64,000 bases of DNA. Source: Cyanophora paradoxa CCMP329 (taxonomy: Eukaryota > Plantae > Glaucophyta). This document shows, piece by piece, positions 1-61,500 of this stretch. The stretch spans positions 186,001 to 250,000 of the forward strand of contig QPMI01000709.1 of the NCBI GenBank assembly GCA_004431415.1, given 5' to 3'. The notes beneath the pieces were generated by a model. The model did no database searches, was not told the origin of the DNA, and saw only the letters and a program-made list of their open reading frames with translations. Position 1 is the first letter of the stretch; every line of letters begins with the position of its first letter. The position numbers and the translations under genes were made by a program.

Positions 1-150
1 GGCGCCGGGCGCCGCCTAGCTAGTCATCGCTGGTGTACCCAGCCGAGCTCACCGTACCCCCGCCGAAAGAACCCAGCGCGCGAGGCAGCGCGATCCGAGC
101 CACGCGCCAGTTTCCGAAGCTAAGGCCAGCACATTTGAGACCAATCGGCA

Positions 151-1091
151 ATGGCAGGTGCGTCTTCGCGCTTCTCCCCGTCCCGTCGATGTGCTTTCGC
201 GCGGCGGGACGCTAACGCCGCGCGCGATTTCGCAACGGCAGGCAAGAGGAAGTCGTGCGTGAACTCATGCGGTTCCGAAGCCGCGCGTCCTAGCTGCGAA
301 GCTGATCCTCGGCATTTGAACAATACAGGGAGGGCGCGGAGAAGGAGGAGGAGAAGCCGCAGCGCCGCAGTAGCCGGTGGGTAGATTGAATGACTCGTAG
401 AACAGAATCGGACCGGGCGTCCGCGAGCAGGTGGGTCGCCGTCAATGACTGACGCCCGGGGGTCCGCGCAGGCTTTCGGGGACGTCCGACAAGGCCGAGA
501 AGCCCAAGGCAGAGCCGAAGCCGGCGAAGCGCAAGAGCGGTGAGGGCCGCGCGTGCGATCGCGGCCCGCGGGGCGCCGCCGACGGGCGGAGCAGAGCCGA
601 AGAAGAAGGCCGCGAAGGAGGAGGAGCCGAGCGAGGAGGAGGCCGAGAAGAGCGAGGAGGAGGAGCAGAAGCCCAAGAAGGGCAAGGCGGCCCCTGCCAA
701 GAAGGAGACCAAGAAGCCGGCCAAGGCCGACAAGCCGAAGGAGGCCGCCAAGGACGAGGAGGAGAAGGAAGCCGACAAGGACGACGAGGAGAAGGAGGAG
801 GCGAAGCCCAAGGCTGCAGCCGGCAAGGGTCGGCGCCGCCCGCCGCGCCCCCGCGCCCCCGCGGCCCCTGACGGCCCGCCGGGCAGGCAAGGGCAAGGGC
901 AAGGGCAAGGGCAAGGGCAAGGGCGGCAAGCCCGACGAGGAGGAGGGTGTGCACGCGCCCGCGGCCCGCGGCTTCGCGCGCGCTCGCTGACGTGCAGCGT
1001 AGCGGGGCCGGCAGAGGAGCCGAAGCCGCCGGTCGACGTCTTGGTGCTGTACGAGCTCACCTGCGCGAAGGTCCTCGCTGGCACCTTCTAG
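151..1091 (+). CDS. Small Lys/Glu-rich protein with HMGN-like N-terminal nucleosome-binding motif (7 exons)
   Basis: Exons 151-157, 242-254, 329-376, 472-539, 595-828, 887-946 and 1015-1091 are joined by GT-AG introns in a consistent frame. Translation: MAGKRKSEGAEKEEEKPQRRSSRLSGTSDKAEKPKAEPKPAKRKSEPKKKAAKEEE...GKGKGK...PDEEEEEPKPPVDVLVLYELTCAKVLAGTF*. The last acceptor is ambiguous (AG at 997 or 1014). Confidence 0.75.
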
Positions 1092-1356
1092 GCGGACGGG
1101 CGCCTGCGACTGCGCCTTCCCCCGCCCCGCCGGGGGCCCGGGGCCCCCGGGGCCGCCCGCTGCTTTTTTCAATGCAGTAACAATAATACCACGCTCGTTC
1201 TTCCGCATGCGCCCCCGCGAGAGCATGCCCCGCCCCACCCAGGTCTACCCCCGGTGCCGATCGCGCGCCGCGCCCGGAGGGCTCAAGATACTGTGGCGAA
1301 CTGTCCTGGTTGAAAGAAGGGAGGGGGAAGCTTAAAGGGGCCGCCCGCGCCCGCGC

Positions 1357-4300
1357 CTAGGCCTTGAGGGCGAAGGAGACCTGGGGCTTGCCCGGGACGG
1401 CGAACTCTTTCCTGTTCTCGGGGTCCTCGGCGGCGGGGTCCGAGGTGCGGGCGACGGAGAGGGCGCCGGCGGGGAGCTCGAGCTGCTTGCAGAGCCACGC
1501 GAGGTTCTCCTGCAGCACCGCCACCTGCACACCCAGAACGACGCAGGTCAGGTCAGGCCGAGCCCGGGGCCTCCCCCTCGCCTCCCCCTCCGCCCCGCTC
1601 CCCCCGCGGACCTCATCGAAGGGCATGACGAGCTCGAAGGCCTCCACGCCGCGCGCCTCCGAGTCCTCCTTCACGTACCTGGCGGCCTCCTTCTCAGGGG
1701 CGGGGCCGAGGCGGGGCGGGCGCAGGGGCGCGGCGGGCGCTCGCGCACCCGATGAGCGGCATGAGCTTCTTCCAGTTGGCCTCGACGCTGGGGACGGCCC
1801 GCAGGCGCGGGATGGTGTCGGCCGGCCAGCTGCCCTTGGCGCCCTCGTAGATGGCGCGAGCCGTCGTGAGGAAGTCCTGGTGGTACTGCGGGAACTCGCC
1901 GGCGACGAGGACGACGCCGCGCTCGACCTCGACCTTGGCGGGGGGCGCGCCGCCCTTGGCGCCGCCCTTCTTGGGCTTGGAGAGCTTCTCGAGGCGCTCG
2001 CGGAAGGCGGAGACGGTCTTGGCGAGGAAGTCAGTGGCGCGGGAGAGGGCGCGGTCCACGGGGCCGGCGGCGGGGAAGGGGGCGTCGATGATGAAGCCCT
2101 TGCGGTGGAGGAGGTGCCGCCAGACGTGCTCGGACCAGTGCGGGCAGATGGGGGCGAGCAGGAGGGCCTGCGCCTCGACGAACTGGAGGGCGAGGTCGGC
2201 GTGCATCGTCTCCACCGAGGCGCGGTACGTGTCCTTGGCGATCTGGAGGTCGAAGAAGCCGGACTTGAGGGCGTCGCGGAAGAGCATGCGGTCGAAGGCG
2301 CGCCCCGCGTTTTCGACGCAGCGGTTCATCTCGTTGCGGAAGACGCGGTCGGCGAAGAGGGCGTCCGAGGGGCCCGTGCGGAGCTTGCCGGCCGCCGCCT
2401 GCTCGACGATCTCCTTGCAGAGGTTGAGGTTCGTGGTGAGGCGCAGGATGGCCATGTTGGCCGTGTCCACCTCGAAGTTGGCGTCGTAGCCGCCGTCGCC
2501 GGCGTTGGCCAGCGCGAAACGCATGCCGTCCGCCGAGTACTCCTCCACCGCCTCGATCAGCGTCTTGAAGTTGCCCGTCGACTTGGACATCTTCTCGGCG
2601 TTGAGGAGGAGGTGCCCGTTGGTGCGGATGCCCCGCGGCCAGTGCTTCTTCGCGAAGATGCCGACGTGGTTGTACAGGAAGAACGTAAGGTGGTTGTTGA
2701 TCAGGTCCTTGCCCGAGCAGCGGAGGTCCACGGGGTACCAGAAGTTGAACTCCTTCTTCATCTTCGCCAGCGCCGCCTCCGGGATCTCCGTCTCGCCCTT
2801 GGGGTACGGCGCGTCCAGCAGGATGTGGTCCCACACCTGCCGGGGGGCCCGCTCAGCAACGAAGTTCCTGGAATGTACGCGAGATGCGAGGGCGGCGGGG
2901 CGGCGGGGCGGGCCTTGTGGGTGAGCTGCTCGGCGCGGATGTTGAGGGGCCCCGGGGCGGAGCCGTCGACGACGCCGCCCTGGAGGAGGTGCGCGAAGGT
3001 GTAGAAGGCCATGTAGATGGTCGAGTCGGAGAGGGAGTCGATGAGGTACTGCTTGTCCCACGGCAGCCGCGTCCCCAGCCCGTACGTCCGCGAGCACGCC
3101 CACTCCCGCAGCCACGCCAGCGTCGCGTTGAACGCGTTCCGCGTCTCGTCCGAGAAGAGCTGCCGGCCAGACCGTTAGAGCCTCGCGAGCAGTCAAATCT
3201 TGTGCAGGAGGCCGCGCACCTCGAGGGAGGCGAGGCACTCCTCGGTGAGCTTGCGCCAGGACTCCTCGCCGTAGTCCAGGTAGTACTGGTCGGTGAGGCA
3301 CACGACGCACTCGTCGCCCGAGCGGGACATCACCAGGCCCTCCGGCTCGCTGTACCGCGCCGCCGTCCTTCCCAGGCAAGGGTCGTCAGAGGCGCGGGAG
3401 ACTTCGAAGCAAGTACTAGCTAAACCGCGCGCGCACCCGGCGGCGAGCATCTCGTCGCGGATGATGGGCTTGGCGTCCTGCACCTTCTTGCCGGCGTGCG
3501 GGCCGACGAGGAGCACGCCCTCGTAGAAGCCCTTGAGGTACGTCGCCTCCTTCGCCTTGGCCAGCAGCTCCCGGTCGTTCTGGCTCTTGATCTTGAGCTG
3601 CGTGCACACCGTGACCGCCGACTGGTCCCCGTACTGCGCGCGCGCGACACGTAGCAATCAGAATCCGACCCGCCTCGCGTACTCTCATCATCAAAGACGA
3701 CGGGAGCGCGTGCCTCGGGGATGTTGATGATGGGGACGACCTCGAAGGGCACGACCATCTCGTCGGTGATGCCGTACTTCTGCCGCAGCTGCGGCTTGTT
3801 CTTCAGGTCCATCAGCGCCACGTAGTCGTCCGGCGCGTCCGACGGCACGCTGCGCGGGCGCGGGCGCGGGCGCGGGCGTCGCTGAGCTCCCCTCCGAGAG
3901 GCCTGGGGCGGGGGGGTGGGGCAGGGCGGACCTCGTGACGATGCCGGTGCCCTTGCCGGTGCTGATGGTGAGCATCGGGAGGGCGTAGACGCGCTCGTAC
4001 TTGAGGGCGTTGGGGGCCTTCAGGGGCAGGCCCAGCAGGTCGGTGCCCTTGACCGTCGCCAGCAGCTTCACCTTGCCCTCCTCGGGGCTCATCCCCTGGA
4101 ACGCCATGTCTGCGCGCACGCACGAGCCCCCGCCGCCAGGCGTCAGGCGCGCCGGCCCCGCGCGTCCCGCAGCTCGAGGGCGCGCACTGCGGGCGGCGCG
4201 GGCCGTGCAGACGAAGACCTCGCCCTCGTTCGTCTCGTACGCGCCGTACTGCGCGCCGCGCGCTCGCCGCTCAGACGGGAGCTCGCGTCCGGAGGCGGCC

Positions 4301-5875
4301 CCTCTCACCTCGCCGTCGGGGAGGACCCAGCAGTTGGTCTGCCCGTACATCGTCTCCGGGCGCAGCGTCGCCGCCGCAAGGAAGACCTTGCGGCCCTGCG
4401 AACGAAGCGCCTCGGACGAGGCTGTACCCGGCGGCGTGCGAAGGGAGCGCGCACGGCGAGGGCCTGCAGGGCCGCCGGGAACGGCTCCAGGACCTGCAGC
4501 TTGATGATCGTGTACTCCTGCGCCGAAAATGAGTGAGCCCGTACCCACAAAAGGGGAGGGGGGGGGGTGTGGACCTGGGGGAGGACGCCCTCGCCGGACT
4601 GGCGGTCGTGGTCCATGCAGGGCTGGCCGTCGAGGGGCGAGTAGATGGTGTAGCGCTTGCCGAACTTGATCTTGCCGAGCGCCTTCAGCGTCTCGAACTG
4701 CCACTGGATGAACGAGTCGTAGTACGGGTTCACCTGCGCGCCGCCGCTCGTCTCGAGACGCCGGCCGGGGCGGCGCGGCGCGAGGCGGGAGGAGCGGGGT
4801 CACGTGGGTGGTGATGAAGGAGCGGCGCCAGTCGACGTGGAGGCCCATGCGCAGCAGGTCGGCCTTCGCAAGGGGCGGGAAGTAGCGGAGCCAGTGCTCC
4901 GCCTGCCGGCCGTGCGTGAGGAAGGCCCGCCGCGCGGGGCACCGGCGCCGCGGGGGGTGCGCACGTCCTGGAAGGCGGGGATCTCCTCCTCGGGCACGCC
5001 CATGCTCGCCAGGATGTCCCACTGCCGCGTGGACTTGCCCGACTTGGCCGCCGCCTTGCTCTACGCGGCGCCGGTGCCCAGCCGTCAGCCGCGCCCCCGG
5101 CCGCATCGCAAGCCCCCGGCCCCGCCCCCCGCCCCGCCCTCGCTCGCCTTCTTGCCCGTGAACTTGAGGAGATCACCCTCCCCCTTCTCCTTCGTCGTTG
5201 CCGCCTTCTCCTCTGCGCGCCGCGTGAGGGGCGCCGCGCGCGGCGCCGCGCTGGCGCGCGCGGCCGCACCGTCGTCGGGGAACTCGGGCGGGCACCCGAA
5301 TTGCTCGATCTCCTTCTTCAGCTTGTCGGCGCAGGCCTTGATCGGCATGCCCGTGCAGTGGAAGCCGAACGGGAAGAGGGCGCGCTCGCCGCGCATCCGC
5401 CGATACGACACGCCGAACTCGCACTTGGACAGCGAGAAAGCGTGGCCCAGGTGCAGACGCCCGTTCACGTAGGGATACGGGAACGTCACGAGGAACCTGC
5501 GGCGAGGTCAGCACATCGCGCCTGCCGCCCGCGTTCCGACGCCATACGGCCGACACACGCCGGGAGCCGCGAGCACCGCCGGGCGCTCACAGCCGCGGAG
5601 CTCCGTCGGCCGGCATATCTAATGCGACGCCCTCGGCGGCGCCGAGTACTGGCGCACTTGGTCACGCCGGCGGCCTCCTCAGGCGCGTCCAGCTCGAATG
5701 CCTTGGCATCGTACCAGAGCTTCTGAACATCCTTCTCGATCTTCAGGAGTTCGTCGCGGCGTGCGAACGACGCCGGCGCCTGCGCGGAGGCCGACCTGGG
5801 CATCAGCAGCGGAGCGGGTGGCTGCCTATAGCCAGCGCAAAAACGCTTGCGCACCGCCTTCTCTTTGGTCGCCAT
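1357..5875 (-). CDS. LARS1: Cytosolic (eukaryote/archaeal-type) leucyl-tRNA synthetase, multi-exon
   Basis: Exons give [15 protein letters not shown] (HIGH motif), [51 protein letters not shown] (editing domain), [10 protein letters not shown] and [10 protein letters not shown] (KMSKS motif). Confidence 0.97.
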
Positions 5876-6299
5876 GCCGACGGCTGGCGCGAACAAAAAG
5901 TGGCGATCGAGCGGGGGGGGGCGACCGGCGGCAGGGTACGTCGGCCTTGCAGTGAGCTTGGTACACACGTGTGTGCGGCGCATTGGTTGTGTTTTTCTCG
6001 GTCTCCAGAGCTCGAGATGGATTATCTTAATGCCCATCAACGTCCCGACGACTATACTCCCAAGCTCCAGTCCGGAGTCGCGCGGCCGGTTGAACGTGTA
6101 CGTGTACTCGTGCGGTACTTAGCCTAGTAGGAGAGAGAGCGACAGAGAGCGACGTCAGGCCTCGATCGAGCTTAAGCCTTCACGCGTACGCCACTAGATC
6201 TACCCGGCCCGACGGCCTTGCAGCTGCTGCGCATGCTCGAACCCCCCTGCCGCTAGGCGCTCGGCTAGCACGGATTCATGATTCTCGGCTTTCGGCGCA

Positions 6300-8050
6300 C
6301 CTACACCCGCCTGCTCCCTCGCTAGTGCTATGCCTAGCGAACGCCTTCTTCGAATCCCCGTCGCCGTACGCGTTCTGTTGTCCTCTGCCTTCGATCGGGC
6401 GCCTTTCTCTGAAGAACCTGCGTTTGGGCACGATAGTCTTTACGCTTCTCCATTCTCTGATGCATAAAGCGGCGGCCGCACCTAGGCCTGCTGGTTTTAG
6501 CTTCTCCCCCGTGCTAGCGAATATTTAATCCGCTCAACTCACAAGATCTGGTGATTGTGCTCTTAATTATAAGCTTGATCACCTACATGACTCAGGGTAT
6601 CAGATGCCTAGCCTCTTATCCACACCTCTAGATCTAGTGGTGATTTATCTCTTGCAGTGATTGCAGGTGCTTCGATTAGCTTGGATCCATGCGCATGCAT
6701 GGTTACGTGGTTAGACTATATATATAGCTATAGCTATATATTTTATTTATATGTCGACGTCTGAGCTGGCTTGGGCATATGCATGTCTAGATCTAGATCT
6801 TATACATACTATATATTCAAGGCTTCTTCTTCTATGTCTGATCATGATCATGAGGCGGCCAGTTCGATGCATATATATGATGCTATCCACCATATAGGCC
6901 AGTTTGACTTTGTCGAATTCCTTGATGAACTTGTTGATTTCGAGGCAGCTCTCTGGTCCGACGGTCTGAGGACAAAGCTCAAGTTAACCTTTATTTGTCC
7001 TCCAAGTACGCTACCTTAAGCTTCCCTTATTCGCTAGCGCTATTGGATGAAGGCGTCACAGTGTGCCCCTCTTCTCTGACCGACCATTTCTCTCAGTCTG
7101 TTCTCCAACCATTTCTAGATCTCAGTCTGCAGATTATCGGATAGGTCTATATAGTCACTGAGTCCTGCTCTCTGACCATTTCTCCCAGTCTGCTCCGAGG
7201 CTCTAGATCTAGATCTCCCACGATTTCTTAGTCGACACCCTTTTACAGTACTTTCAAAAAAGTTTTGTCGACCGTTGGACCGGTTTTTTTCACTTAAGCT
7301 TGGGCCTTGGCCATATGGTCTTCTGCTTCCAATCCTTTCCACTGCCGTGAAACGTTTCACTTTGCTTGTTGAATTCGAACTCCCTGCAACTCACGTGCAC
7401 CCTTTTATATAATTAACGTTCATTTGGCCTCGAGATCTTGTGCACGTGAGCAGTACTAGTACTAGTACTAGTGTGGCAATTTTTGCAAGCTCGAGCGCTC
7501 AAATCCCCGCCGCCGGGCCGCGCCTGTGTCATTAATATTGCAATTGGCCGCACGGCTAACTTAAGCTTGGCAATTCGCGCAAGTACAAGTCAAGCTCAAA
7601 TCCCCGCCGGCCGGGATCTTAACGCGTACGTAGGAACTTCGGAAGCTTAATTAAATATCATGATATTAGGCTGTACCGTAGTACGTTGACGTATACGTGA
7701 AAACGTTCATGGGGTACATCTTGACCGTCGGACTTGGAGCTTGCACTGGGGTATGCAAGCTGCACATGCAGCTGGGGGCCTGGGGCCGGCCCGGGCCCGG
7801 CCCCATCTCCAGTCTGCCAGACTGCGCAGTGCGCACTGCGCAGTGCGCACTGCGCACTGCGCACTGCCGCAGTGCGCAGCTGTACAATGTACATGTGCGG
7901 CGATGATGTGCCAGTTCCTGTCACAGACTCACAGTCGCTGTGTGCCGATTCGGTCTAAGGAATCGACGCTTCGAATCTAGCCCGACGAATCACGTGTGAT
8001 ATCACTGATATGCACCGCGAACACGCAGTAGGTTGTGAACACACTCCAAC
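6300..8050 (-). mobile_element. Highly degenerate LTR-retrotransposon-like remnant (gag-like)
   Basis: AT-richer block. The minus strand has a broken CCHC-like knuckle (TCNHCKR*..H near 6640-6670) and a gag-like stretch EINKFIKEFDKVKLAYMW (~6885-6940). TGTTGG on the minus strand at 8050 could be an LTR start. No intact ORF. Confidence 0.3.
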
Positions 8051-8504: not shown

Positions 8505-9665
8505 ATGTCGCCCAGCAACAGGCTCACGCAGCTGCCGTTTTTCGACATCACCGGCGAGCAGCGACTCCTTGATTGCCCTGTCGGGCGCGATGGGCTCGTG
8601 CGCGTTGCTTCGGACGATTGGTGTGACCTGATTGAGGTGAGCACCTCATGATGAGCTCCCGCGCGCCGCGAATCCTCCCTGATCTCGGAATATTCAGGTC
8701 TTGGCGCGTGAGCTGAACGTGCCGTACGCCGCGCTCCTGCGGCACCCGAAGTACGGCCAGTCGCTGGAGGCGGTCCATGACCTGATGGAGACCGGTGTCT
8801 ACGAGCTCCCGGACGACTCACCGATGAGACCCCTGCGTGAGCGGAGGTTCCGTGAGCGGCGGGAAATCTTCGAGAAGCGTGCCGCGGCGGTGGCGGCCGG
8901 CGGTTACGTCGCCAGTCCGGTGTCGCCGCGGACGGCGAAGCGGCCGTGGCAGCTGCCGGAGCTGGATCCAAGCACCTACGGCGAATACGACCCGAGCTCA
9001 AAGTCCGCGCTCGGCTCCTTCGTCGACTGGCCCTCGCCCCGCGTGGTCCGTAGTCAAACCGGTTCGCGTGCCGTCGGCGTTGTTGACCCCGTGCGTAGAT
9101 CTTGCGCCGGAGGCTGGCAAGCCGCAGCGATGACTCAGACACGGGTCACGTGTCGGAGGGCGAGCCAGCGTCGGCGGCTCGGTCGTCCATGGACACCAGC
9201 TGCAGCGAGGAGGCCGCGGCGCGCCCGATGCTCCGCCTCGACTGCCTTTCTGGCACCAGCCCGGTGTCCTCTGGCCTGTCGCGGGCGTCGGGGAGCCCGT
9301 CGGCGGAGGAGGTGCTGGCGTGCAAGCGGGAGCGGCAGGCGCAGGAGGAGGCCTGCGAGGCCTCGTGCAAGCGCTCGCGGCGCGACCCGATGAGCGCCGC
9401 CTCGGCCGCCTCGCCCGGCCTCAGCTTCTCGGGCAGCTCCTCCCCCGCCCCCCTCTCCGCCGCCTCCGCCTCCTCCCTCTCCTCCGCCTCCTCCTCCTGC
9501 TCCTCCGCCCGGCCCCGCCGCGTGCGCCGCGCCCCGCGGCAGCAGACCGCCTGCCAGGCCTCGCGGAGCCGCAGCGAGGGCCTCGCCGGCCTGTCCAAGT
9601 CCCTCGACATCAACTTTTCGGAGCTCCTCTCTTCCCACATGTGCTCGGTCGCCATCCAGGCCTAG
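8505..9665 (+). CDS. Hypothetical protein, paralogue A of an inverted pair (3 exons)
   Basis: MSPSNRLTQLPFFDITGEQRLLDCPVGRDGLVRVASDDWCDLIE | VLARELNVPYAALLRHPKYGQSLEAV...WPSPRV | ILRRRLAS...SVAIQA*. Introns are at the same positions as in paralogue B. Confidence 0.8.
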
Positions 9666-11206
9666 GCGAAGCCGATTCTTGTCACTTTCACGCCGTAGCT
9701 TGCGGTCTTTCGCTTTAGTGGGCTCTTCATGCAATGGGGGATTCACATATTCTGCGCGTTCGCAGTGTAACATAATGTAACTACAATTTTCCGCCTTCGG
9801 GCCCAGCTGGCAGATGTTCGTCCTGTTTGTACATTTTTCCCAGACGGACACTACGTCGGCTGTACTATTACGTAGCTCAGTAGCTTAGTATGTCTGATAG
9901 ACAAGCTGCAGCGGCAGCGCCTGTCGTGTACATATCCTGCGGTGTAATTTAACAAGGTCGCCTGCTTGCAAACCCCTGTGACTTGCGAGGCCCGGGGGCG
10001 TGGTCGTGGCGCCGCGCGTGGGCGCCGGGCAACCGGGCCGGGCTCAGGGCCCCTCCGACGGCCCGAGGGCTCATGCCATGATGGACATGATCCGATGATC
10101 ACTGATCATGAGAACGACTACACATGATCCGTTAGTCCGCTCAGCGTCTGCAGCCCTACCTGCGGGGCCCGCGCGCGGCCCCGGCGTGCGGCCCGGGGCA
10201 GCCTGAAAGGCCCGGACCCGGGGCGCCGCCGGGCCGGCCCGGGCCCCGGACCGTCGGACCCGCCGCCGGGGCCGGGCCCCGGGCCCGGCCGCGGGGGCCG
10301 GGGCCGGGGGCCCGGCCCGGGGCCCGGCCTGCCACACTGTGACATTATCCCACATAGGGCCCCCGGGCCCGGTCCCGATCAAGAGCCGGGTCACCGGATG
10401 CCGGACGGCGCCCGATCCGGACCATGCCCGCGGCCCCGCGCGGCGCGGCCGGCCACCCCCGTGCCGCGGCGCACAATGCAAGCCCGTGACTCAGTGATAA
10501 GTCAGAAAATTGAAAGCGATCGATATCATTGCATTTTTCATTCTGATTATACGAGAGACTTGTACAAGATCGAATAATGAACTGTCGATAAGTTGAATTA
10601 CAGAGGATGCGAGGGCTGCCGAACTACATTACTTTATACTAGGAACATCAAGTACAGGGTAACTGCTCCGTAGGAACAAGAAGCTAGAGCTTCTGCACTT
10701 ATGTACAGCCTGACGACTGAATAACTTATTGTGCTGCGAGGTTTCAAAACACGATGAAAGATAAGAGCGAAAAAGCAGTTGGAGGAAGGCCGGGCGCCGC
10801 TCATGCGAGAGGGGCGGTGGCCGACTGCGCGAAGTGGGAGGAGAGCAGCTGGGAGAGGGTGTGGTCCAGCGTCTTGGACAGGCCGGCGAGGCCCTCGCTG
10901 CGGCTCCGCGAGGCCTGGCAGGCGGTCTGCTGTCGCGGGGCGCGGCGCACGCGGCGGGGCCGGGCGGAGGAGCAGGAGGAGGAGGCGGAGGATAGAGAGG
11001 AGGCGGAGGCGGCGGAGAGGGGGGCGGGGGAGGAGCTGCCCGAGAAGCTGAGGCCGGGCGAGGCGGCCGAGGCGGCGCTCATCGGGTCGCGCCGCGAGCG
11101 CTTGCACGAGGCCTCGCAGGCCTCCTCCTGCGCCTGCCGCTCCCGCTTGCACGCCAGCACCTCCTCCGCCGACGGGCTCCCCGACGCCCGCGACAGGCCA
11201 GAGGAC
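9266..11206. repeat. 334-bp near-perfect inverted repeat (arms 9266-9599 and 10873-11206)
   Basis: Base-by-base comparison found 3 mismatches, all synonymous. Sequence outside the arms diverges. Confidence 0.9.
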
Positions 11207-12112
11207 GAGGGGCCGGAGACGGGGCCGAGGGAGGCGCGGCGGAAGGGGTTGGGGAAGCGGAGGACGTTGGGGCGGAGCTCGTCGCCCGGGCGGGAGGAGG
11301 AGAGGCAGCCGGCGGTGGGAGTGGTCGGGGGCACCGACGGCCGCGCCGGCTCCTCCGCGAAGAGCGAGTCGACCGCGCCGCAGTCAGCGGCGACAGCCGC
11401 GCACGCCGCCGCCTCGCACGACGCGGAGGCCTCCGGCTCGCCGCGGAGGACGCGCACGGGGCGGGATGACTGGACCGAGATGTTGTGCCTCCGGTGCAGG
11501 ATCTGCGGTCAGAGGCGTCAGGCGCGCGGAGCGGAGCATAGACACGGGATGGGCTGACCACGCGGGGCGAGGGCCAGTCAACGAAGGAGCCGAGCGCGGA
11601 CTTTGAGCCGGGCTCGTAGTCACGGAAGGTGCTCACGTCCAGCTCGGGCAGCCGCCACGGGCGCTTGGCGCTCCGCGGCGAGACGGGGTTGGCAATGTAG
11701 CCGCCGGCAGCCACCGCCGCGGCGCGCTTCTCGAAGACCGCCTTCCGCTCCGCGAAGCGCCTCTCGCGGAGGCCGAGCGCGGGTGCCTCGGCGGGCAGCT
11801 CGTAGACACCGGTCTCAATGAGGCTTCGGACCGCCTCCAGCGACTGGCCGTACTTCGGGTGCCGAAGGAGCGCGGCGTACGGCACGTTCAGCTCACGCGC
11901 CAAGACCTGCGCGGAAAACCTGTCATGATCCAGCACGCGAGACAGGACAGGGCGGAGCGCGCGCGCGTGCAGCTCAAGTGATCGCGCACCTGGATCAGCT
12001 CGCACCAGACGCCGGAGGGAACGCGGATGCAGGCGTCCTGTCCTACGCGGAAGTCGAGATACCGCTGGTGGCCGACGACGTCGAAGAAGGGAAGGCACGA
12101 CGGGCGAGACAT
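10801..12112 (-). CDS. Hypothetical protein, paralogue B of an inverted pair (3 exons)
   Basis: MSRPSCLPFFDVVGHQRYLDFRVGQDACIRVPSGVWCELIQ | VLARELNVPYAALLRHPKYGQSLEAV...WPSPRV | ILHRRHNISVQSSRP...ATAPLA*. Homologous to 8505-9665. Confidence 0.8.
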
Positions 12113-21301: not shown

Positions 21302-24300
21302 ATGGCCCTTCGAGCGCGGGCCTCGGGCCTGACGTCCATCTCGCCCGAGAAGCTCCTGGTTCGCCGGTCACGCCGCACCCCTGCAGCCCTCGGACTAGTC
21401 GTTGTGCCGGCTGGCGTCGGCGGCTAATCGCAGCCTGCAAGAGCTAACAGAATGCGTGCGTTTTACAGGCCGAATCCGGTGGGCTGCGTGCGACGGACGT
21501 GGAATCGCTGGTGCGCGGTGGCGCTTTCTACGGTGTCGCCCTCTCGCTCACTCCGCTGGCTTAGGATGTGAGCGACAATGAGCTGACGTCTATCCCGAGC
21601 GAGATCAACACGTTCCCGTACCTGGAATCGCTCTGCGCCGCTCACAACTCGATTTGGTATGCCGGCGCGATGGCGAACTGCTTCTCGGTCGTCCTTACAA
21701 CCGCGTGCAGCATCGTGTCCTCTCTGCCGGCGAGCCTCACCAAGCTGGACTTGGTGCGCTGCGTTTTCATGTCGCCAGTTGCGGCGGGCCGGGGGCGCTG
21801 GGACTCACGCCGCCGCTCACGCGCAGAGCTACAACAAGCTCGGGCCCGCGGAGGCGAAGTTCCTCCGGGAGCTCTCCGGCCTCCGAGATTTGGATCTCAG
21901 GCGAGTGTCCGGCGGCCGCGCCGCGCTGCAGCGTAGCTTACCGCGGCGCGCCCGCAGCTACAACCTGTTCACCGACGTCGCCTTCCTCGGATCAAACCGG
22001 GCGCTGCACACGCTGCGGCTGGCGGGGAACCGGATCAGCGGGCTGACAGGCCTGGGCGCCCTCGGCAACCTGACGAGCCTCGACCTGCGCAACAACCTGA
22101 TCGACCAGTTCGAGGACCTGCGCTGCCTCTCCATGAACCCTCTCCAGCACCTCTCGCTCCGCGGTAACCCCATCACCAAGTGCGGCCTGCCCGCCCACGC
22201 CCGCCTCCCCTCTTTCAAAAAGAAAGAAAGGAGGAAAGAAAGAAGGGAGAAACTCTAGTCTGATCTATACGTGCAGGCTCCAGTCGTACCGCTACTCTGT
22301 GCTCCACATCATGCCGGCGCTTGATACGCTTGACGGCGAGAGTGCGCGCTGCACCCCCCGTCTTTCTGCCCGCCTGCCCGCCCGCCCGCCCGTCTCAATC
22401 CGAGCGTGCAGAGCTCCCGCAGTCGCCATCCAAGGGCCGCCCAGCGTGGCAGAACCCAGGTGACTCGACCCCCCCCTTCGCCCGAGCTCCCCGGTGGCGC
22501 TCACGCTCCGCGCTGCAGGCGCTACGGGGACCAGCCCGACCCGCCGCGGGTCGAACGACGACATGCCGCCGCCGCCGCCGCCGCCCGGTGCGCCGTCGCG
22601 CTCCGCTAGCGGCCGGCCCCGCGGCCCGGACCGAGTTCGTGCGGCAGGGGCGGCGCCGGGGTCGCCGCTGGCGCGGAGCTCGCCCACGGCCCGGCGGGCC
22701 ACGCCGCCGCTGGGCTCGCCCGGGACCAGCTCGGGCCGGCCCCCGCGGCAGCGCAACTTCCAGGCCGTCCCCATGCCCCACTCGGGCCCCGTGCGCGCGC
22801 GCCCCGCCCCGCCCGCTCCGCCCGCGCCCGCCGAGCGGGCGCCGTCGGCAGAACTCGAACGGGGAGTCTCCGGCGGCGAGCACGACGAGCCTACCCCCCG
22901 CGGCCTGAGCGCCTCGTACCCGCCCGCGGACGGCGCCTCGGCGCACGATTCGGGGGGCGAAGCGGAGGCCAGCTCGCCGGCGCCGGCGCGGCGCTCTGTC
23001 GAGATAGGGCAGTACGGGCTGCCGCCGGCCCGGCCCCGCCCGCCGCCCCGCCCTCGGGGCTCCTCCCGCCGCCCCCGCCCCGCCCCCGCCCCCTCCTCCC
23101 CCCTCCCAGCGGGACCCGGACGCCTCGTTCGCGTCGATCGCGGCGGCGGCGGCCGCTCTGCTGGCGGACGCGACCCCCTCCACGACGCGGGGCCCCACGC
23201 CGCCGCCGCCCACGGAGCGGGGGCGCGGGGCGGGCGCCCCGGCGCCGCCGCCGCAGACGGAGGCGATGGTGAAGCTGATCACGAAGCTGGCGGACACGCT
23301 CTCGCTGGAGGAGATCCAGCTCATCGCAGAGTCCGACCTCGCCACCTCGCTCTTCACCACCATCATCGACGACTCGGCGCTCATGCTCGAGGCCGGCGGC
23401 GAGCAGGGCGCCCTGCAGGGCAACGGGGGCGCCCGCGCGGCCGCCGGGCCGGAGCGGAGCCCGCAGCGGGCGGCCGCGGCGGCGGCCCTCTCCGCAGCCC
23501 ATCAGCAGCAGCAGCACCACCACCACCACCAGCACCACGCAGATGACCGGTCGGCGTCGCCGGCGCCCAGCGCCGACTCCAGCGACGAGCGCCTGCGCGA
23601 CGAGATCCTGCGCACCATACCCCCCGCCGGCGGCTCCCCCGCGCGCCTCGGAGGGGGTGCGGAGGGGCCGGAGGCGGCGCTGCGGTCGCCGGCGGCGGCG
23701 GCGGCGGCGGGGGCGGTGCAGGAGCTGGCGGAGCTGCTGGAGGAGCCCGGGGTGCGGGAGCTGATGGGGCGCCTGGAGGAGGGCACCCTCTCCCCCGCGA
23801 GCTCCGCTCCCTCGCCGACCGCCTCGCCGCCGCCGCCGCCGCCCCGCCCGACGACCACCAGCCGGCCCCGCACGCCCCGGCCCCGCCCGCGCCCCCGCCG
23901 CCGCCGCCGCCGGCGCAGGGGGGCCACAGCTCGCCGGAGGGTGTGCTGGGGACGGGCCCGCTGGAGGAGCGGCTGGCGCAGCTGCGGGCGGACCGGGACC
24001 TGCTGGAGGACAAAATGGCGGCCTTGGAGGCGCGCCTCTCCTCGCTCCGCGCCTCCCGCACCGACCCCCTCCGCGCCTCCGCCGCCTCCTCCTCGGGGGC
24101 CGGGAGCCCGCCGCCCCGCGGTCCCCCCCGCCCCAACTCCCTCGCCTTCTCCCCCGGCGTCAGCGTCGGCCGCGACGAGTCCGGCTCGGTGGCCGGCGGC
24201 GGCGGGGCGGAGTGGAGCACGGCGCGGGCGGAGCGGGAGGAGCTGCTGCGGCGCTGCGCGTACCTGGAGTACCGGATCGCCAAGGCCGAGGCGCAGGCGC

Positions 24301-41012: not shown

Positions 41013-43708
41013 CTAGGGCTTGGGGGGTACGCGGGCGGCGAAGTACTCCCCAAGGAACGCGAGGGAGCGCTTCGGGAGGCGGGCGAGCCCCGCGCCGTAC
41101 TCCACCCGCACCAGCCCGAACCGCTTCGAGTACCCGTCCGCCCACTCTGGCGGGCCCGCAGTGAGGCCCCCGCGGTCGCGGGGGGTACGGCGCGCGCACC
41201 GAAGTTGTCAAGGAGGCTCCAGGCGAGGTAGCCGCGGAGGTCGGTGCCCCCCGCGACGGCGGCCTCGAGCTGGGCGAGGTAGTCGCGGAAGTAGGCCACG
41301 CGGGGCCCGTCCTGCACCGCCTGCTCCGCGCCCGCCTTGTCTTCGCCCGCGACGTCCATCCCGCTCTCCGTGACCCAGACCGGCGGGCGCCCGTAGCGCT
41401 CCGTGAGCCACCCCAGCACCCGGCGGAAGCCCCACGGAACCACCAGCAGCTGCCGCCCGTCGGTAGGGGAAGAAGGAAGAGTCGTGATTGGAAATTTCAG
41501 GCCCGCGTACCCACTCCGAGTCGGCGGCGGGCCCGATGGGTACGCCGTCGCGCTCAATGACGGGTACGGCGCCCTGCGGGGATGCCCCCTTCGTGTCGTC
41601 CCGCACGTACCGGCTCGTGTAGTGGCTGCGGGGGATACGGGACCATCAGCGAGCACGCGGCCGGGGTACAGAGAGAAGTGACGTCACGCGCTTGAGGGCG
41701 AAGTAGTCGAGGGAGCCGCGGAGGGCGGCGGCCTCGTCGGGGGAGAAGCGGGGCAGGGCGGGGCCGAGGCGGGCCCGCATGGAGGCGGGGTAGTCGCCCC
41801 TGTAGGCGGGGTCCGCGAACCAGCCCGCCATGAACTCCATGTTCCGCTCCGCCGCCGCCGCGTCTGGCGCCGAGGGCGTCTGAAGAGGTAGATCCTAGAG
41901 AGTAGAGGCAGCTAGAAGCTAAGCTGCGGCTGGACCCTCGAGACACACCGGCGGAGGAGTTGGAGAAGGGCTCGCTCCAGTCCAGGTTCAGGTTCATGGA
42001 CACCTTCAGATGGGGTCAGATCGGATCTGATCGGATCGGATCTGAGCGGGCTCGGACCTTCCCGTCCGGGACGAGCGCGCGCAGCTCGCGGGCTGCCGCC
42101 GCGTGCGCGAGGAGCACACCGTGCCTGCGGCTCAGATCAGATCAGATCAGATCAAACCAGAGGTTCGAAACGTGGAGAGAATGCAGGGGCGGCGCGCCCG
42201 CAGAGCCAGGGTTCGGTGGAGGAGTTGCCCGCGGGGCAGGCGGCGCGGTCACTGCGAGGAGCCGCCGAGTCATGATCACGATCATGAGTGATCGCGAGTC
42301 TTGGAGGGGTGAAGGGGGGGGGGCGGACGAGCAGCGGCCCGGGGCGTGGATGCCCCACGCGTAGCCCAGCATGCAGAAGGTCCAGGGCTCTGAGCGCGTG
42401 CGTAGCGTACGTCAGGAAGAACGAGGGGGTGGGGGACAGTGCGAGGGGGCGGGGAGTGAGGCCTGGGGGTACGTGTGCCGACCATTGAACGTGGACCACA
42501 GCGTGACGCGGTCGCCGAGGAGGGTGAAGGCCGCGCGGGCGTACGCAGCGAAGTCACGTGCGAACTCCGCCCCTGGCGGATGAATCCATCGGGGGTACAA
42601 CGCAATCAACGGGGGGGGGGTGAACCGCCGAGGGCGCAGCCGTATCGGTCGTCCAGAGCCTGCGGGCAATCCCTGCGGGACCGTCGGGGGGTACACAAAC
42701 TGAGAGGGGGTCGGAGGGGCGCGCCAGTCTGCGGGGCGGTCAGAGGGGAAGGGGATGCAGGATCGACGGGGAGGTGGGTACGGTAGAGTGTGGCCATGGG
42801 TACGATGCCAGCCGCGAGGAGGGCGTCGACCAGGGACGAGTAGTAAGCCGCCGCGGAGGCGCTCACGGGCCCCACGCCCCCGGGGATCAGCCTGCAGGGT
42901 ACGGTCCTCGCCTCGAATGGGGGGGGGGGGTAAGGGGGTACCGGGACCAGGAGATGCTGAAGCGGAAGACCTGCCCCCCGCCGGAATCGAACCGGAGATC
43001 CGTAGAGGAGGGGGCGGGGGCGGGGCGTGGCGTGGCGGGAGGACCTGGACGCCGGCGCGCCTCATGAGCTCCACGTCCTCGCGGTACCTGCTCGGCCCGG
43101 CGGCCCGCCCGCCTCGCCTCGCCTCGCGGGGCGGAGGGAGAAGCGGGATGTGAAGTGGGATCGGGGCCCCGCACCGGTGCCTGAAGTCGCACGCCACGTC
43201 CCCGCTCTCTCCCCGCGCCACCTGCCCCGCCCCCGGGCCCGTTCGCCCCCTCGCTGTCAGCTGGGGGCGGCGCGCGCGCGCGTGCCTTGCCCGGCCGGCG
43301 GCAGAAGGTGTCCCATATCGATTCGCTGCGGTTGTCCTCCCGCCAGGCGCCTGCGGGGGCGAGCTCAGCGAGCGCAAGCGGCTTGGAGCGAGGCGGGCCG
43401 CGGTCGCGCGCCCTCCACCTGGTACGCAGCCTGCAGCAGGGCGCGCGCGCTGGTCAGGCGGCGGAGAGCCCGAGCGGGCCGCGCGAGCGAGAGGCTTGCA
43501 CCGTGGCGGTGCCCCACAGAAAGGAGGCGTCGTACGCCGCCCGGCGCTCGATCGGGGGCCACGTCGCCGGCGCCACCGCGCGGCGCCCGAGGCTGCGCGA
43601 GGAGGCGACCGCTGCCGCGAGGATCACAACCAGCACCGTCGCGAGGTGGAACCACCGCCGCTGCGGCGTCCGCGCGCCCGCCGCCGCGCCCGCCGCGGGA
43701 GGGGTCAT
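41013..43708 (-). CDS. Glycoside hydrolase family 1 (beta-glucosidase) with N-terminal signal anchor
   Basis: FLWGTATAAYQVEGA, SGDVACDFRH, FRFSISWSR, WSTFNE (acid/base), VWVTESG (nucleophile) and [23 protein letters not shown]. Confidence 0.93.
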
Positions 43709-52620: not shown

Positions 52621-54471
52621 TTAGTAGATCTTGCCGTTCCAGGGCCCGCAGTACTTTACGATGAAGGGGTGGCCTGCGCCCGCCGCCGGCGCGTGAGCCG
52701 GCGCGGGGCGCGCCCGGGTGGCGCAGCGGGGCGCACTGAGGACGTCCTTGAGGGGCAGGCGCTCGCGGGGGTCCCTCCGCAGCAGCTGCCGCGGGCGGCG
52801 TGAGGCGCGAGCGAGGCGGGGCGGGGCGGGCCGGAGCCGAGCCGGAGTGAGGCGGCGCGCACCCTCCGGATGAGGTCCTGGGCCTCGGGCCCGATGGCCT
52901 TGGAGGTGAAGCGGAGGTCGACCTTCTTGATGCGGTCGTACATCACGTTGCGGTCCGGGTTCTCGAAGGGCGCGTGCTTCGTCAGGAACTCGTAGAGAAG
53001 CACGCCCAGCGTCCAGATGTCCACCTCCGGCCCGTGCTGCCGCGGGGCGTCAGCGCCCCCGCCATACACCCTCCCCGGTCGCCTCCTTCCGGGCCCCGCG
53101 CACCTCCTGGCGCTCGATCATCTCCGGGGGGAGGTAGTCTGTCGACGGCCGGCCGTCAGGCGGGGGCGCGCGGGGCGGGGGGGCGGCGGGAAGGGGAGAT
53201 CTCAAGCGCCGCACCCGGCGTGCCGCACATCGTCTTCCTGCGCGACTTGGAGTGGACCGACCAGCCGAAGTCTGCCGGGCGCGTCGGGGGCGCGCCCGTA
53301 CGGGAGAGAAAGCGGCGTTCGGGGGCGGAGGGCGAACCGGCGAGTTTGATGCGGCCGTTTCCGTCGAGGAGCAGGTTCTCGGGCTGAGGCACGCGCCGCC
53401 TCAGGAGGGGCGAGGGGCGAGCGGGGCGCGGCAGTGCGAGGTGAAGCGGAGACAGTGTGTTCGGTAGCAGATCATAGCGAGGGTGCAGAGAGGGGACGGA
53501 GACGTGCGGGAACGGAGAAGCGCGCGCGCGCACCTTCAGATCACGATGTATGATGTTTTTGCTGCGAGGGGGAGTGAGGCGCCGCGCTTTATACGAAGCT
53601 ACGGGCGATGAGCGAAGGCACCTGTGGCAGTACATGAAGGCTCGTGCGAGGTCGGCGATGTACTGCGGAGGGGCGCGCGGCTTTGAGCTCGGCTCGAGGC
53701 CACGCACGCACGAGCGGGGACGCACGCGGGCCGAGCGGGCCTCATCGAAGGGTCCCTCGACGTTGTGCTGAGGAGCAGCAGAACTAAGCCGCCGGAACGG
53801 ATCATTGCATTGCAAGGGGCGCCACGCACGAGGATGTTGAAGAGCTCGCCGCGGGCGGCAAACTCAAGGATGAGGTAGATGTGGCGCTCGTCGTGGAACC
53901 AGCCGTACAGCCGCAGGCAGTTCGGGTGCCTGGCGGGGGAGATCAGCGCCCCCGCTTCGCGGCTGCTGTTGCTCCTAGCGGGCCGTGCACCGCAGGTTGG
54001 ACATGATCTCAATCTCACGGCGCAGCTGGTGCTCCACTCCATCCGCAACGAGCTCTTTCTTACGGAGCTGCTTCAGGGCGACAATGAACTTCGTCCTGCG
54101 CTCCCGGGCCAGATACACACGCCCGAACTTGCCCGCGCCCTGCGAGCCCTTCAGTCGAACTGCATCGGCGGCTGGCAGGGGGCTCGCTTGCCAGGCGGCG
54201 GCCGATCTCGAAGTCCTGGATGGTCCACTTCTTATCAGCGCACTGCGTGGCCGAGGGCCTGGACGCGGGCGTCAGAACTGCCAGGCTGAAGGGCTTCGGT
54301 GAGGCGCGCACTGCCTGTAGAACAGCTCGGCCGGCGACCGGCTGGGATCAACCGCTGCGGCCATCTGATTCCTCCCTGCGCTGCGCTTGCTGGATGTTCG
54401 CTCGGTCGGCCGCTAGTTGTCCGTTGTGAGAGAGTTGTACCCCGCGACTTTTTCCGGGTACGGGGAAACAT
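52621..54471 (-). CDS. Aurora-family Ser/Thr kinase
   Basis: [66 protein letters not shown]...[16 protein letters not shown]. Confidence 0.95.
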
Positions 54472-57044: not shown

Positions 57045-58527
57045 TCATGCGGGGCCCCAGGAGCGGAGGGTCTCGGAGTCGTAGGTCACGGCTGTGAGGA
57101 ACTTGCGGTCGGGGCCGGAGAATTGTACCCCCGTGAGGAGGGCGTTGGGGGCCCGCGCCGAGAACTCCAGCTTCACCTGAGGTGGAGATCAGGGGGGACA
57201 AGGCGGGGAAGGCAGATGGGGGTGAGAGAGGGAAGGCGGCGGGTGGTACGCGCCTCGGGCTGGGGGGAGGCGGTGTAGGACCACACGTGCACGTACTGGT
57301 CCTCGCTCGCCGACGCGATCTGAGAGCAACAGGGGTCGGGGGTGCGAGGATCGGTTTGTTGGGGGTACGGTGCGCACGAGGCCGCGAGAGGGGGAGACGT
57401 CCATCGCGTTGATTGTCCGCGAGTGCGCGTCGATCGCGCACGTCTGCCGGCCGCCGGCTCAGTGAAGGTGGGGGGGAAAGGCGGAAGGGGGTACGGTGCG
57501 CGCCTTCCGCTTGGAGGCCACGTCGAAGATAGCGATGGTGCCGGTGCTGTACCCCGCAGCCAGCTGCCGCTTGCCGTGGAACCCGAGCGACGAGCAGGGG
57601 TGCCTGCCCGGCGCAGTGAGCCGCAGGGGCAGAGCGGCAGGGGCGGGGCGGCTGCGGGGCGCGGCGCACCCGCTGCCGAGGAACGTGCACTGCTTCTCGA
57701 AGCTCCCGGCGGCCCAGACGTGGATGCTCCCCTCGTCGTCCCCGCTGGCGAAGAGCTCGCTGGACTTCTGCGGCCGGCCTCGGCGCCGGCGGCGCGCGGC
57801 GCGAGCGCGGGCGCGGGCGCGCGGAGCGGCCGCACGTCGGAGGCGATGTCGGTGATGGCGAACTTGTGCCCCGTCATCGTCCGCACGAGGGAGAACTCCT
57901 CGCGGTCGGCGAGGAAGACCAGCACCTCGCCCAGCGACGTGCCTGCCCGGCGAACTCAGCCGCGCCGGCGCGCCGCCTGCTGCGCGGCGCGCGGCGAGGC
58001 GGTGCGCACCGACGCAGAGGTACTCCTTCTCCCCGTCCGACACGGAGCAGATGCCCCTGCAGAAGCGCGAGCGGTCTGCGGGCCAGGATCGGCGGGCGGG
58101 CGCGACCAGCGCGGACACTCGGAGCCGCGCCGCACCTGTGCCCTTTGCGACGGGGATCGAGTGGTTGAAAATGAGCCGCGTGCCGTCCTTGTCGAACACC
58201 TGGGCGCGGGCGCGCGTCGGCGGCTGGCGCGCAGGGCGTGCGCGCCGCGCTGCTCACCTGCACGCCGTTCTCGGTCGCCAGCACGAGCAAGACCGCTGAA
58301 CCGATGGTCACGAACTTCGCCTGCATGACTGGCGCGCCATCCTTATAAGCTACGCGCGTCGGAGTGCTTCCCGATGGGTTCTGGACCGCCGCCTCCGGGA
58401 TGAGGACGACCTCGTTCAAGTGCACATAAGCCAGGTGGCTGCCGCCGGACGACAGGTTGTTGAACGCCAGCGAGGGCGAGCCTTTCAACGCGTGGCCCTC
58501 CTTGACGGCCTCAGAGAAGATCCCCAT
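57045..58527 (-). CDS. WDR54: WD40 repeat protein, WDR54-like
   Basis: LKGSPSLAFNNLS, LLVLATENGVQ, FCRGI, LCVGT..GEVLVF, GHKFAITDIA, LAAGYSTGTIAIFD, IDAHSRTINAMD and SASEDQYVHVW follow the WDR54 motif order as I recall it. Confidence 0.8.
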
Positions 58528-58572
58528 CGCTATCTACGAATCTAGGACTACGATGACCCGGCACGGAGGCCA

Positions 58573-61500
58573 AGCCGCGGAGTTTGACGTACCCTGCTGG
58601 ACGGCTTCACGTCTTCAACGTCGTCTTGGAACGTCGTCTTCGTCGTCTTGGACGTCGTCTTGAAAGGGTCCTTGTTCAAGGACGACACGATCTCTTGACG
58701 CCGTCCGTCACGGTGTTGACTTTTGCACGTATGTAAAGCTCGTTTGAAAGCTAGGCCGCCAGCTAGCATTCGGCCTGCCGATCAGAGTGCACATCGCTGA
58801 CCGATCAGAGTGCGACATGGCGATGATGAGACCCATCGCTGTCGCGCTCCTTCTCCTCTGTGCGGCTGTCGACGTATTCGCCCGTGAGCGCAGGATGCCC
58901 CGCTAGCTGGCTTGCAATTTCTGCCTTGGATGCAATTAATATAGTGCAATTTCTGCCTTGCAATTGAATTCATGCTTCCTCTCAGAGACACCGATCATCG
59001 TCACTGACGGGTTTGAGCCCGTCATTGGCGGATACGCCACGATCGTCGTGACCGTCAGCGCTCAGTCTACCCGATGTGTCGTTTCCTGCGATGGCGTGCT
59101 CGGTCTGATAACCAGCCTGGACCAGGACTATGCGCCAGCGCCAGCCCCTCAAGGCCGTGCGACACTCAATGGGACCACTGCCAGAGTTCCAGTGCGCTTG
59201 TCCAAGGCTCTCAGCGTCGCAGCGATATCTGATCAGCAAGCCCTGTCCGCGCGCAGGTTCCACTCACGGTCAGCGATTACATGTACATATGCTATGCGAC
59301 TGAGATAATCGGAGGTGTCTCTTTCACCGACGAATCAATGACCGTAATTGTTAGAACGAAGCCATTTCCTCCATCAATTTACATCCCTGCCGACCGTGGC
59401 TTCGTTCCTCTGTCTGGCAATCCGCTTCGGGGTGAGCTCACGCTGACGGTACATCGATTGGCAACGAGAGCAGTCGTGTCATGTTCGGACAACGCCAACC
59501 AAAGCACAATCCCTGTTACAAACGCGGATGCGGATTTCGATGGAGTGGATGCATCCAAGAGCGGTACAACTGCCACAATCCGGGCACGTATATTGAAAGT
59601 ACCTGATCTCGTTGTGCTGATCCTGCAGACAGCTGGCTCTGGCTGCCAATGTAGCCCTGTACAAGTGCAAGGCAACGCAGACCGTCGCTGGCCTTACCTC
59701 GGGTTTTAGTTCTGACGCATACATCACCACGATCCCTAGACCAGATCCTCCTACTTTCAACCTCTCTTCTGCCTTTGCCCTTCTCTATGGAAGCCCCTTG
59801 CGGGTCGATGTATCTCTGTCTGTCAGTGCATCTTCAACGAGAGCAGTAGTTGTGTGCACAGACCTTGACGGGCTGGGTCCATCCATATCCAATGTAGACA
59901 TGGATTACGATGGCATGTCTGCTATACTGTTGGGCACGCGTGCAACAATCGCGGTGCGTTCGTTTTTGCTTATGCATATGCCCGTGATATGCTATATTTC
60001 TGACGAAAACTCGACAGCTTGCTTTGACTGCTGGAAAATACTACAGTTGCACCGCAAAGCAGCGGGTGCTTGGAGTGGACTCGCTCGCCAGCCAGGGGAC
60101 TAGCATCACAACAGTTCCCCCACCTCCAAAGGTCAACACTGCTGGCTTTCTTCTCATGTCAGGCGATCCATTACGAGGTGTCATTTCTCTCCAAGTGCAT
60201 CCAGCGTCCTCAAGAACTGTTGTCGTTTGCACCGATATTGCTTCTGGATTACGTGTTCTGAGTGTGGATGCGGACTACGATGGCACACTTTCCGTCTTGA
60301 CTATATCAGGGGAAATCGCAAGAGCTGATGTCAAGGTGCACTGTTTTCAGTGCTCGTTTCATGATCATCCTTCGACCCTTCCCACACTCGCAGATTGCAC
60401 TTCTGGGAAACAGCCGCTACCAATGCACGGCTACGCAGATGGTTCGGGGGCTGTATCTCTGCCAAGCCTGCCATCCTCTTTGAACACGGTGGCACCCGAA
60501 CCTACAATTGAGACAAAGGGCTTCGTGGTACTGGAGGGTGGATTCGTAACTTTGACCTTGACTGTTCATTTAAATTCAACACGTGCTGTCGTGACATGCA
60601 CATCTTCTGACTCGAACACTCTGGTCAGCAGCTCGGATACAGACTATGATGGCATCTTGTCATCAAAGTTTGGACGGACTGCCTCAGTCAAGGTTCAGAT
60701 TTCGGAAGTGCTAAGCAGTAGTACCAACAACTAAGCCTTGATTATGTGCATACGCCGCAGATTGCACTAATGGGAAACAGCCTCTATCAATGCACGGCTA
60801 CACAGACGGTTGGGGGGGGCATATCTCTGCCAAGCCTACCATCCTCTTTGAACACTGTTGCGCCCGAACCTACTATCCAGACAAAGGGCTTCGTGGTACT
60901 GGAGGGTGGATTTGCAACTGTGACCTTGGCTGTTCATTTGAATTCAACACGTGCTGTCGTGACATGCACATCTTCCGACTCGAACACTCTTGTCAGCAGC
61001 TCGGATACAGACTATGATGGCATCTTGTCATCAAAATTTGGACTGACTGCCTCAGTCAAGGTTCAGATTTTGGAAATGCTAAGCAGTAGTACCAACAACT
61101 AAGCCGTGATTTATGTGCATACGCAGCTGACTTTAGAGGAGAAGAAGGATTACACCTGCAAAGCGATTCAAATGGTGAACAACTCATTCTCTACGCCCAG
61201 TGAAGAGGTCATGCTCAGCACAAAACACGGTATGCTTGCTTGTCACCCGGCATACGTATATATACGCATGCACATGACTCCAGCTCCCGGGAGTCCAGAG
61301 ACGAATACGCAGAGACGCTTCCACTGGATATCTTGTAAAGGGTGCAATATGCGATCACGGGGCATCTAGGTAGAAGTTCTGATCATTATCAGTTCTTTTA
61401 CCTGGCCTGGGGACCGTTCTCAAATTCAGTACTAGGGTGCCGTTGGAACCAATGCTGTTTGTACAGACATTTACGTCCGTGGGCCTGAAGCCCTGGGCGA

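Follow-up and report, generated by a model that had tools for sequence, protein, structure and literature searches.

HMGN proteins bind the nucleosome with the sequence RRSARLSA(K,M)P, which sits inside a positively charged nucleosome-binding domain (PMC3105402). Their layout consists of a nuclear localization signal (NLS), the nucleosome-binding domain, a second NLS, and a variable acidic C-terminal regulatory region (PMC11344144). The genes have six exons, of which the first four have conserved limits (PMC3105402). Cryo-EM has placed the arginines of the HMGN2 core segment in the acidic patch of H2A-H2B, and HMGN proteins are thought to be regulated by phosphorylation that releases binding (PMC12487698). 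An invertebrate HMGN homologue has been sought and none was found, and the same study pointed to an APEX1-like N-terminus in amphioxus (PMC10188112). The paper on the tardigrade protein Dsup describes it as a mystery where the HMGN nucleosome-binding motif came from (PMC6773438), and HMGN-like proteins have been described as an 'untapped realm', with a call for searches across lineages (PMC12487698). We found no report in the literature of an HMGN-like protein in an alga or a protist.

Two non-vertebrate proteins with this class of motif, Dsup and yeast Dot5, have been described before, and the class is not categorically new. The Dsup motif, RRSSRLTS, is located at residues 363-370, near the C-terminus (PMC6773438; motif in PMC13347269), and is required for nucleosome binding (PMC6773438). 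A segment of Dsup that includes RRSSR has been modelled in the H2A-H2B acidic patch by cryo-EM (PMC12487698). Dot5 carries RRSARIAT at residues 6-13, and its nucleosome binding needs R6, R7, and R10 as well as the acidic patch (PMC13347269).

The gene described here lies on the plus strand of a 64-kb stretch of DNA, which was analysed as a whole and is referred to below as the window. It is expressed, has seven exons, and its CDS of 516 nt, or 172 codons, encodes a protein of 172 residues. We lean, with modest confidence, towards the view that this product is a chromatin architectural protein that would dock on the H2A-H2B acidic patch via the sequence RRSSRLSG. The resemblance to HMGN that we propose is a functional one, and descent from HMGN is not claimed. 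The surrounding DNA is GC-rich, intron-rich, and alga-like (68% GC, introns of 55-95 nt), and the G+C content of window positions 1-1400 is 71%.

The N-terminal module of the protein is encoded by exons 1-4. Exon 1 consists of a 5′ UTR (52..150), within which the transcript contigs start at 52-68, and the first seven coding nucleotides (151..157, ATGGCAG), which encode Met, Ala, and the first base of the codon for Gly3. Exon 2 is a micro-exon of 13 nt (242..254) that encodes (G)KRK(S), the first of the basic, NLS-like signals. Exon 3 (329..376, 48 nt) encodes EGAEKEEEKPQRRSS and the two first bases of Arg23, and exon 4 (472..539, 68 nt) encodes (R)LSGTSDKAEKPKAEPKPAKRKS, the K/P-rich half of a putative nucleosome-binding domain together with a second KRK. 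Both of these exons were defined from the translation and the contigs, as was exon 5. The HMGN-like core motif, as read from the translation, is divided between exons 3 and 4. Its first half is at 363..376 (R19, R20, S21, S22, and the CG of R23) and its second half is at 472..481 (the G of R23, followed by L24, S25, and G26). Intron 3 thus interrupts the motif within its third Arg codon (CG|G). Translated exon by exon, the module reads MA / KRK / EGAEKEEEKPQRRSS / LSGTSDKAEKPKAEPKPAKRKS, with the codons GGC (G), TCG (S), CGG (R), and GAG (E) split at the junctions, and the N-terminus encoded by the spliced mRNA is Met-Ala-Gly-KRK-S-EGAEKEEEK-PQ-RRSSRLSG-TSDKAEKPKAEPKPAKRKS.

The remaining three exons encode the larger part of the protein. 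In exon 5 (595..828, 234 nt) the basic stretches KKK, KPKKGK, and KKETKKPAK alternate with the acidic stretches EEEPSEEEAEKSEEEE and DEEEKEADKDDEEKEE, and there is no Arg. Exon 6 (887..946, 60 nt) contains a (GGCAAG)n microsatellite, translated as (GK)6, followed by GKPDEEE. The coding part of exon 7 (1003..1091) encodes AGPAEEPKPP and then a hydrophobic tail of 19 residues, VDVLVLYELTCAKVLAGTF, and closes with the stop codon (1089-1091); the 3′ UTR (1092..1194) extends to the end of the transcript contig at 1194. The GGCAAG microsatellite, at window positions 887-925, is coding, and all of the assemblies, RNA-like and DNA-like, break or thin there, so its copy number may differ among strains. 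The six introns are 84, 74, 95, 55, 58, and 56 nt long. All are GT..AG introns, and in most of them a branch-point motif resembling CTGAC or CTAAC lies close to the 3′ end.

This structure was compared with contigs from four public sequencing runs that were aligned to window positions 1-1400. Three of the runs, from three different studies, are RNA-like (X1, X2, X3), and the fourth is a DNA-like run from the same organism (X15). Each RNA-like run has one contig of 470-490 nt that aligns, with zero mismatches, to 52/68-158, 329-375, 471-538, and 594-829. The joints 158>329, 375>471, and 538>594 are present in all three, and in all three the joint 158>329 contains twelve letters, CAAGAGGAAGTC, of the 13-nt micro-exon. 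The contigs of X15 cover 95% of the sampled words and every intron, which identifies the run as DNA-like, and contain no spliced joint. The joints are thus found in X1-X3 and are absent from X15, and the intron-less form is RNA-derived rather than a genomic variant. Past position 829 the contigs of X1-X3 continue into CAAGGGCAAGGGC, the sequence with which exon 6 opens at 887. A second contig in X1, aligned to 1002-1194, has the last letters of exon 6 (...GACGAGGAGGAG) in front of it, and the last junction is therefore supported by one study. The introns at 829-886 and 947-1002 were added to an earlier exon list from these loose contig ends. Together, the contigs place the transcript at approximately 52 to 1194.

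A first-pass annotation of this DNA had derived first exons of 7, 13, 48, and 68 nt, an RRSSRLS motif divided by an intron, and a gene ending at 1091. The exon lengths are as it gave them, with GT..AG flanks at each of 151-157, 242-254, 329-376, and 472-539. The motif is real in the mRNA, as seen in the spliced contigs and their translation. The end of the gene agrees with the stop codon. The splicing that it proposed is identical in the three RNA studies, micro-exon included.

Could the transcript be non-coding, or the ORF fortuitous? Such a reading would accommodate the lack of any homologue among 1.84 billion representative proteins. It has to contend with a frame of 172 codons that survives six introns of differing phase, and that is open across all six junctions only with the RNA-supported splicing. 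It also has to contend with a GC3 of 0.94 in the CDS and with a strict choice of codons, in which Lys is encoded by AAG in all 42 cases and Glu by GAG in 33 of 34 unsplit codons, as well as in the split codon of the 35th Glu. The first AUG has G at both -3 and +4, there is no ATG in the 5′ leader, and the same splicing was recovered in three studies. We consider a non-coding transcript very unlikely.

The 172-residue protein contains 42 Lys, 35 Glu, 24 Ala, 16 Pro, 15 Gly, and 5 Arg, a composition that indicates intrinsic disorder. A KRK at residues 4-6 is followed by the acidic stretch EGAEKEEEK, by PQ, and by RRSSRLSG at residues 19-26. C-terminal to the motif is a K/P-rich stretch, KAEKPKAEPKPA, and then the second KRK at residues 42-44. 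The residues R19 R20 S21 S22 R23 L24, from exons supported by mRNA, fit the arrangement R-R-S-[AS]-R-[LI], with Arg at i, i+1, and i+4. S21, S22, and S25, the serines of RRSS and RLS, have RRxS and RxxS surroundings and are candidate sites for basophilic kinases. All five Arg are accounted for by the motif (three) and the KRK signals (two). The ratio of Arg to Lys is 5/42 in this protein, compared with 23/25 in an exon of the neighbouring leucyl-tRNA synthetase (LeuRS) gene and a background of 16%/1.7% in the six frames of the window.

A motif of this length can arise by chance. A proteome of 5 million residues with the six-frame composition of the window should contain the strict form RRS[AS]RL[ST] about 4 times. 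The motif alone is therefore unremarkable for such a genome, and it is less remarkable still across the many windows scanned. Three copies of the looser form RRSxRL are present in the six-frame translation of the 64-kb window, and not one of them satisfies the strict form. At the protein's own composition, 7e-8 occurrences of the strict form are expected, and five Arg placed randomly over 172 sites give an RRxxR arrangement with P of approximately 0.002. Judged from the sequence, it is the context that raises the motif above chance. The protein is small, poor in Arg, and rich in Lys and Glu, and it carries the motif some 20 residues in from its N-terminus, with KRK signals flanking the motif and HMGN-like residues on either side.

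These figures bear on a second alternative, that the protein is a generic K/E-rich, disordered protein of the nucleus or nucleolus, of the type of the nucleolin N-terminus, Nopp140, or acidic histone chaperones. Its RRSSRLS would then amount only to a kinase site or a portion of an NLS, and its likeness to HMGN would be chance, helped by low complexity. Alternating acidic and basic blocks do dominate the protein, and nucleolar proteins and histone chaperones show such alternation just as typically. The sequence RRSS is, in addition, generic for sites that are kinase targets or NLS-like, and the composition-based expectation of some four motifs per proteome suits this alternative as well. A generic protein would not be expected to have its Arg confined to the motif and the KRK signals in a genome that strongly favours Arg, nor to have the motif about 20 residues from its N-terminus between HMGN-like flanks on both sides. 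We regard this alternative as unlikely, though it deserves serious weight.

Searches for relatives returned little, and their outcome is in line with what a generic K/E-rich protein would give. Pfam searches at E <= 10 with exon 3 (plus its in-frame flanks) and exon 4 found no family; these pieces, of 22-26 aa, are too short to score. For exon 5 and the unspliced ORF, Pfam gave no relevant family and only sub-threshold, low-complexity matches, which for the exon-5 ORF were to TFIIF_alpha and SRP-alpha_N. When the pieces from exons 3 and 4 were searched against PDB with phmmer, nothing matched at E <= 10, and queries of 22-26 residues have almost no power. A word-indexed search of a collection of 5.8 billion clusters found no relative of exon 5, and no identical protein, and found no relative of the C-terminal tail. 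The ORF at 540-1087 was searched exhaustively with HMMER against 1.84 billion representatives, and no relative of its coding part was found. One weak HMMER match to this ORF (E 1.9e-4) was dismissed because it falls on a part of the query that is out of frame and derived from an intron. A search of the ESM Atlas by features gave no usable match for exon 5, and no relatives of exon 5 were found among metagenome contigs. In sum, neither the protein databases nor the metagenomes yielded an orthologue, a paralogue, or another family relative of exon 5, the tail, or ORF 540-1087. Since the searches with exon 5 gave no identical protein, the gene is missing from the collections that they covered. 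The LeuRS gene was also used as a synteny handle in metagenomes. It led to 16 loci, with identities of <= 55%, and RRS[AS]RL[ST] does not occur in any frame at these 16 loci.

The LeuRS gene is located at window positions 1357-5507 on the minus strand. It is a multi-exon gene of the eukaryotic cytosolic type in tail-to-tail orientation to the HMGN-like gene; the 3′ ends of the two transcripts are approximately 165 nt apart. Among the matches listed, its product is <= 58% identical to LeuRS sequences spread over plants, animals, fungi, and protists. The low identities and the scatter among eukaryotic groups indicate that the search covered the host lineage poorly. Taken with the 68% GC and the short introns, the low LeuRS identity makes the first-pass label of an alga or protist plausible. 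Farther along the window is an inverted duplication (8695-9638 and 10834-11909), with blocks of 383 nt (95% complementarity), 217 nt (82%), and 128 nt (91%). It holds two diverged copies of an ORF starting ARELNVPYAALLRHPKYGQSLEAV, which face each other over approximately 1.2 kb. The regions 6001-8000 and 58001-62000 have a G+C content of 51-58%, compared with 64-78% elsewhere in the window. Exon-sized frames with high GC3 and Pfam domains were found for glycosyl hydrolase family 1 (41177-41389, minus strand), a protein kinase (52815-53093, minus strand), leucine-rich repeats (21947-22234, plus strand), and R3H (63034-63285, plus strand), and these read as ordinary eukaryotic gene content. The long GC-rich ORFs of the window contain no Pfam domain, and there are no histone genes within its 64 kb.

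If the product is, as we favour, a nucleosome-docking protein, then its parts can be assigned tentative roles. The two KRK signals that flank the motif would direct import into the nucleus. R19, R20, and R23 would be inserted into the acidic patch on each face of the nucleosome and would anchor the protein there, as the corresponding arginines do in HMGN, Dsup, and Dot5. The K/P-rich segment, the Lys-rich blocks, and the (GK)6 repeat may make contact with DNA in the nucleosome or linker. What the regulatory domain does in HMGN may fall here to the acidic blocks, which would compete for histone tails or H1 as has been proposed for HMGN. Phosphorylation of S21, S22, or S25 could release nucleosome binding, again as in HMGN. 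The hydrophobic C-terminal tail may, more speculatively, mediate self-association or contact with a partner. A protein of this kind would show tuning of chromatin through the acidic patch in an alga.

The comparison with HMGN itself is closest in and around the motif. RRSSRLSG is identical to the HMGN core RRSARLSA at 6/8 positions (the three Arg together with Ser3, Leu6, and Ser7) and differs from it by A4 to S and A8 to G. A fragment of human HMGN2, the F3 peptide, is given in full in PMC3298710, and we aligned it by eye, without a score, to the sequence of exons 3 and 4. PQRRS-RLS is shared at 8/9 positions in this alignment, and the peptide also has KP, EPKP, and K after a similar spacer, with an insertion of two residues in the protein described here. 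The first-pass annotation had pointed to the order KRK, EG..KEE, PQRRS.RLS, K.EPKP as that of the HMGN nucleosome-binding domain, and compared by eye with the HMGN2 fragment (PMC3298710) the order does match. The wider architecture of first NLS, nucleosome-binding domain, second NLS, and acidic domain is found here as KRK 4-6, the motif at 19-26, KRK 42-44, and the acidic blocks of exons 5-6. The same annotation had also taken HMGNs to be vertebrate-specific. This holds for the family, which is called vertebrate-only (PMC6773438; PMC12487698), and does not hold for the motif, which is present in tardigrade Dsup and yeast Dot5. Its overall reading of the gene as HMGN-like stands in part, namely as regards the gene, the splicing, the motif, and the layout.

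On a third reading, the protein comes from a eukaryote outside the opisthokonts and belongs to the HMGN family by common descent. The family would then be older than the separation of this lineage from animals, and micro-exons and low complexity would explain why it was overlooked elsewhere. The shared order of NLS, EG..KEE, PQRRS.RLS, KP..EPKP.K, NLS, and acidic region would be explained in this way, as would the spread of the N-terminal module over four small exons, as in HMGN genes. In human HMGN1 the motif begins at about residue 19, as it does in this protein, and the nearly equal distance from Met1 is a further point for descent. No intermediate lineages are known, however, and published searches report no invertebrate HMGN homologue (PMC10188112; PMC6773438; PMC12487698). 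Short linear motifs also converge readily, and the C-terminal half of the protein is unlike HMGN. We consider descent distinctly improbable. Were it true, the HMGN nucleosome-binding domain, which is taught as a vertebrate invention, would date to early eukaryotes, and it would have been missed elsewhere since it is short, of low complexity, and split across micro-exons. Coding exons of 7 to 13 nt can conceal such genes from ORF-based annotation. Under either history, a transcribed protein with both the motif and the HMGN N-terminal layout provides a test case for ancient origin versus convergence.

Set beside the known systems, the protein resembles HMGN in being small, Lys-rich, and putatively disordered, with an N-terminal KRK and identical Arg, Ser, and Leu positions in the core. 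The flanks are HMGN-like as well, with PQ before the motif and KP..EPKP.K after it, followed by a second basic signal and then acidic regions, and the N-terminal module is contained within four small exons. It differs from HMGN in length (172 aa, compared with about 90-100 aa in HMGN1 and HMGN2), in the two core changes of A to S and A to G, and in having far more Glu. The (GK)6 repeat and the hydrophobic C-terminal tail have no HMGN counterpart, the gene has seven exons rather than six, and the host is not a vertebrate. Arginine-anchor binders in general insert a short Arg segment into the H2A-H2B acidic patch. LANA and the RRS.R segment of CENP-C have other motif contexts, and CENP-C needs an aromatic residue after the segment, which is absent from this protein. 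With Dsup RRSSRLTS the motif is identical at 7/8 positions, including the six-residue RRSSRL, and both proteins are highly charged, Dsup being largely disordered. In Dsup, however, the motif is near the C-terminus and the HMGN-like N-terminal layout is lacking, and there is no similarity beyond the motif. Dot5 is like this protein in having RRS.R at the N-terminus, with three arginines that mediate binding to the acidic patch, but it is not a small K/E-rich protein. Dot5 does show that the RRS.R motif can be functional outside animals. If the reading that we favour is correct, then the protein described here would extend the motif class beyond animals and fungi for the first time; it comes with the whole HMGN N-terminal layout.
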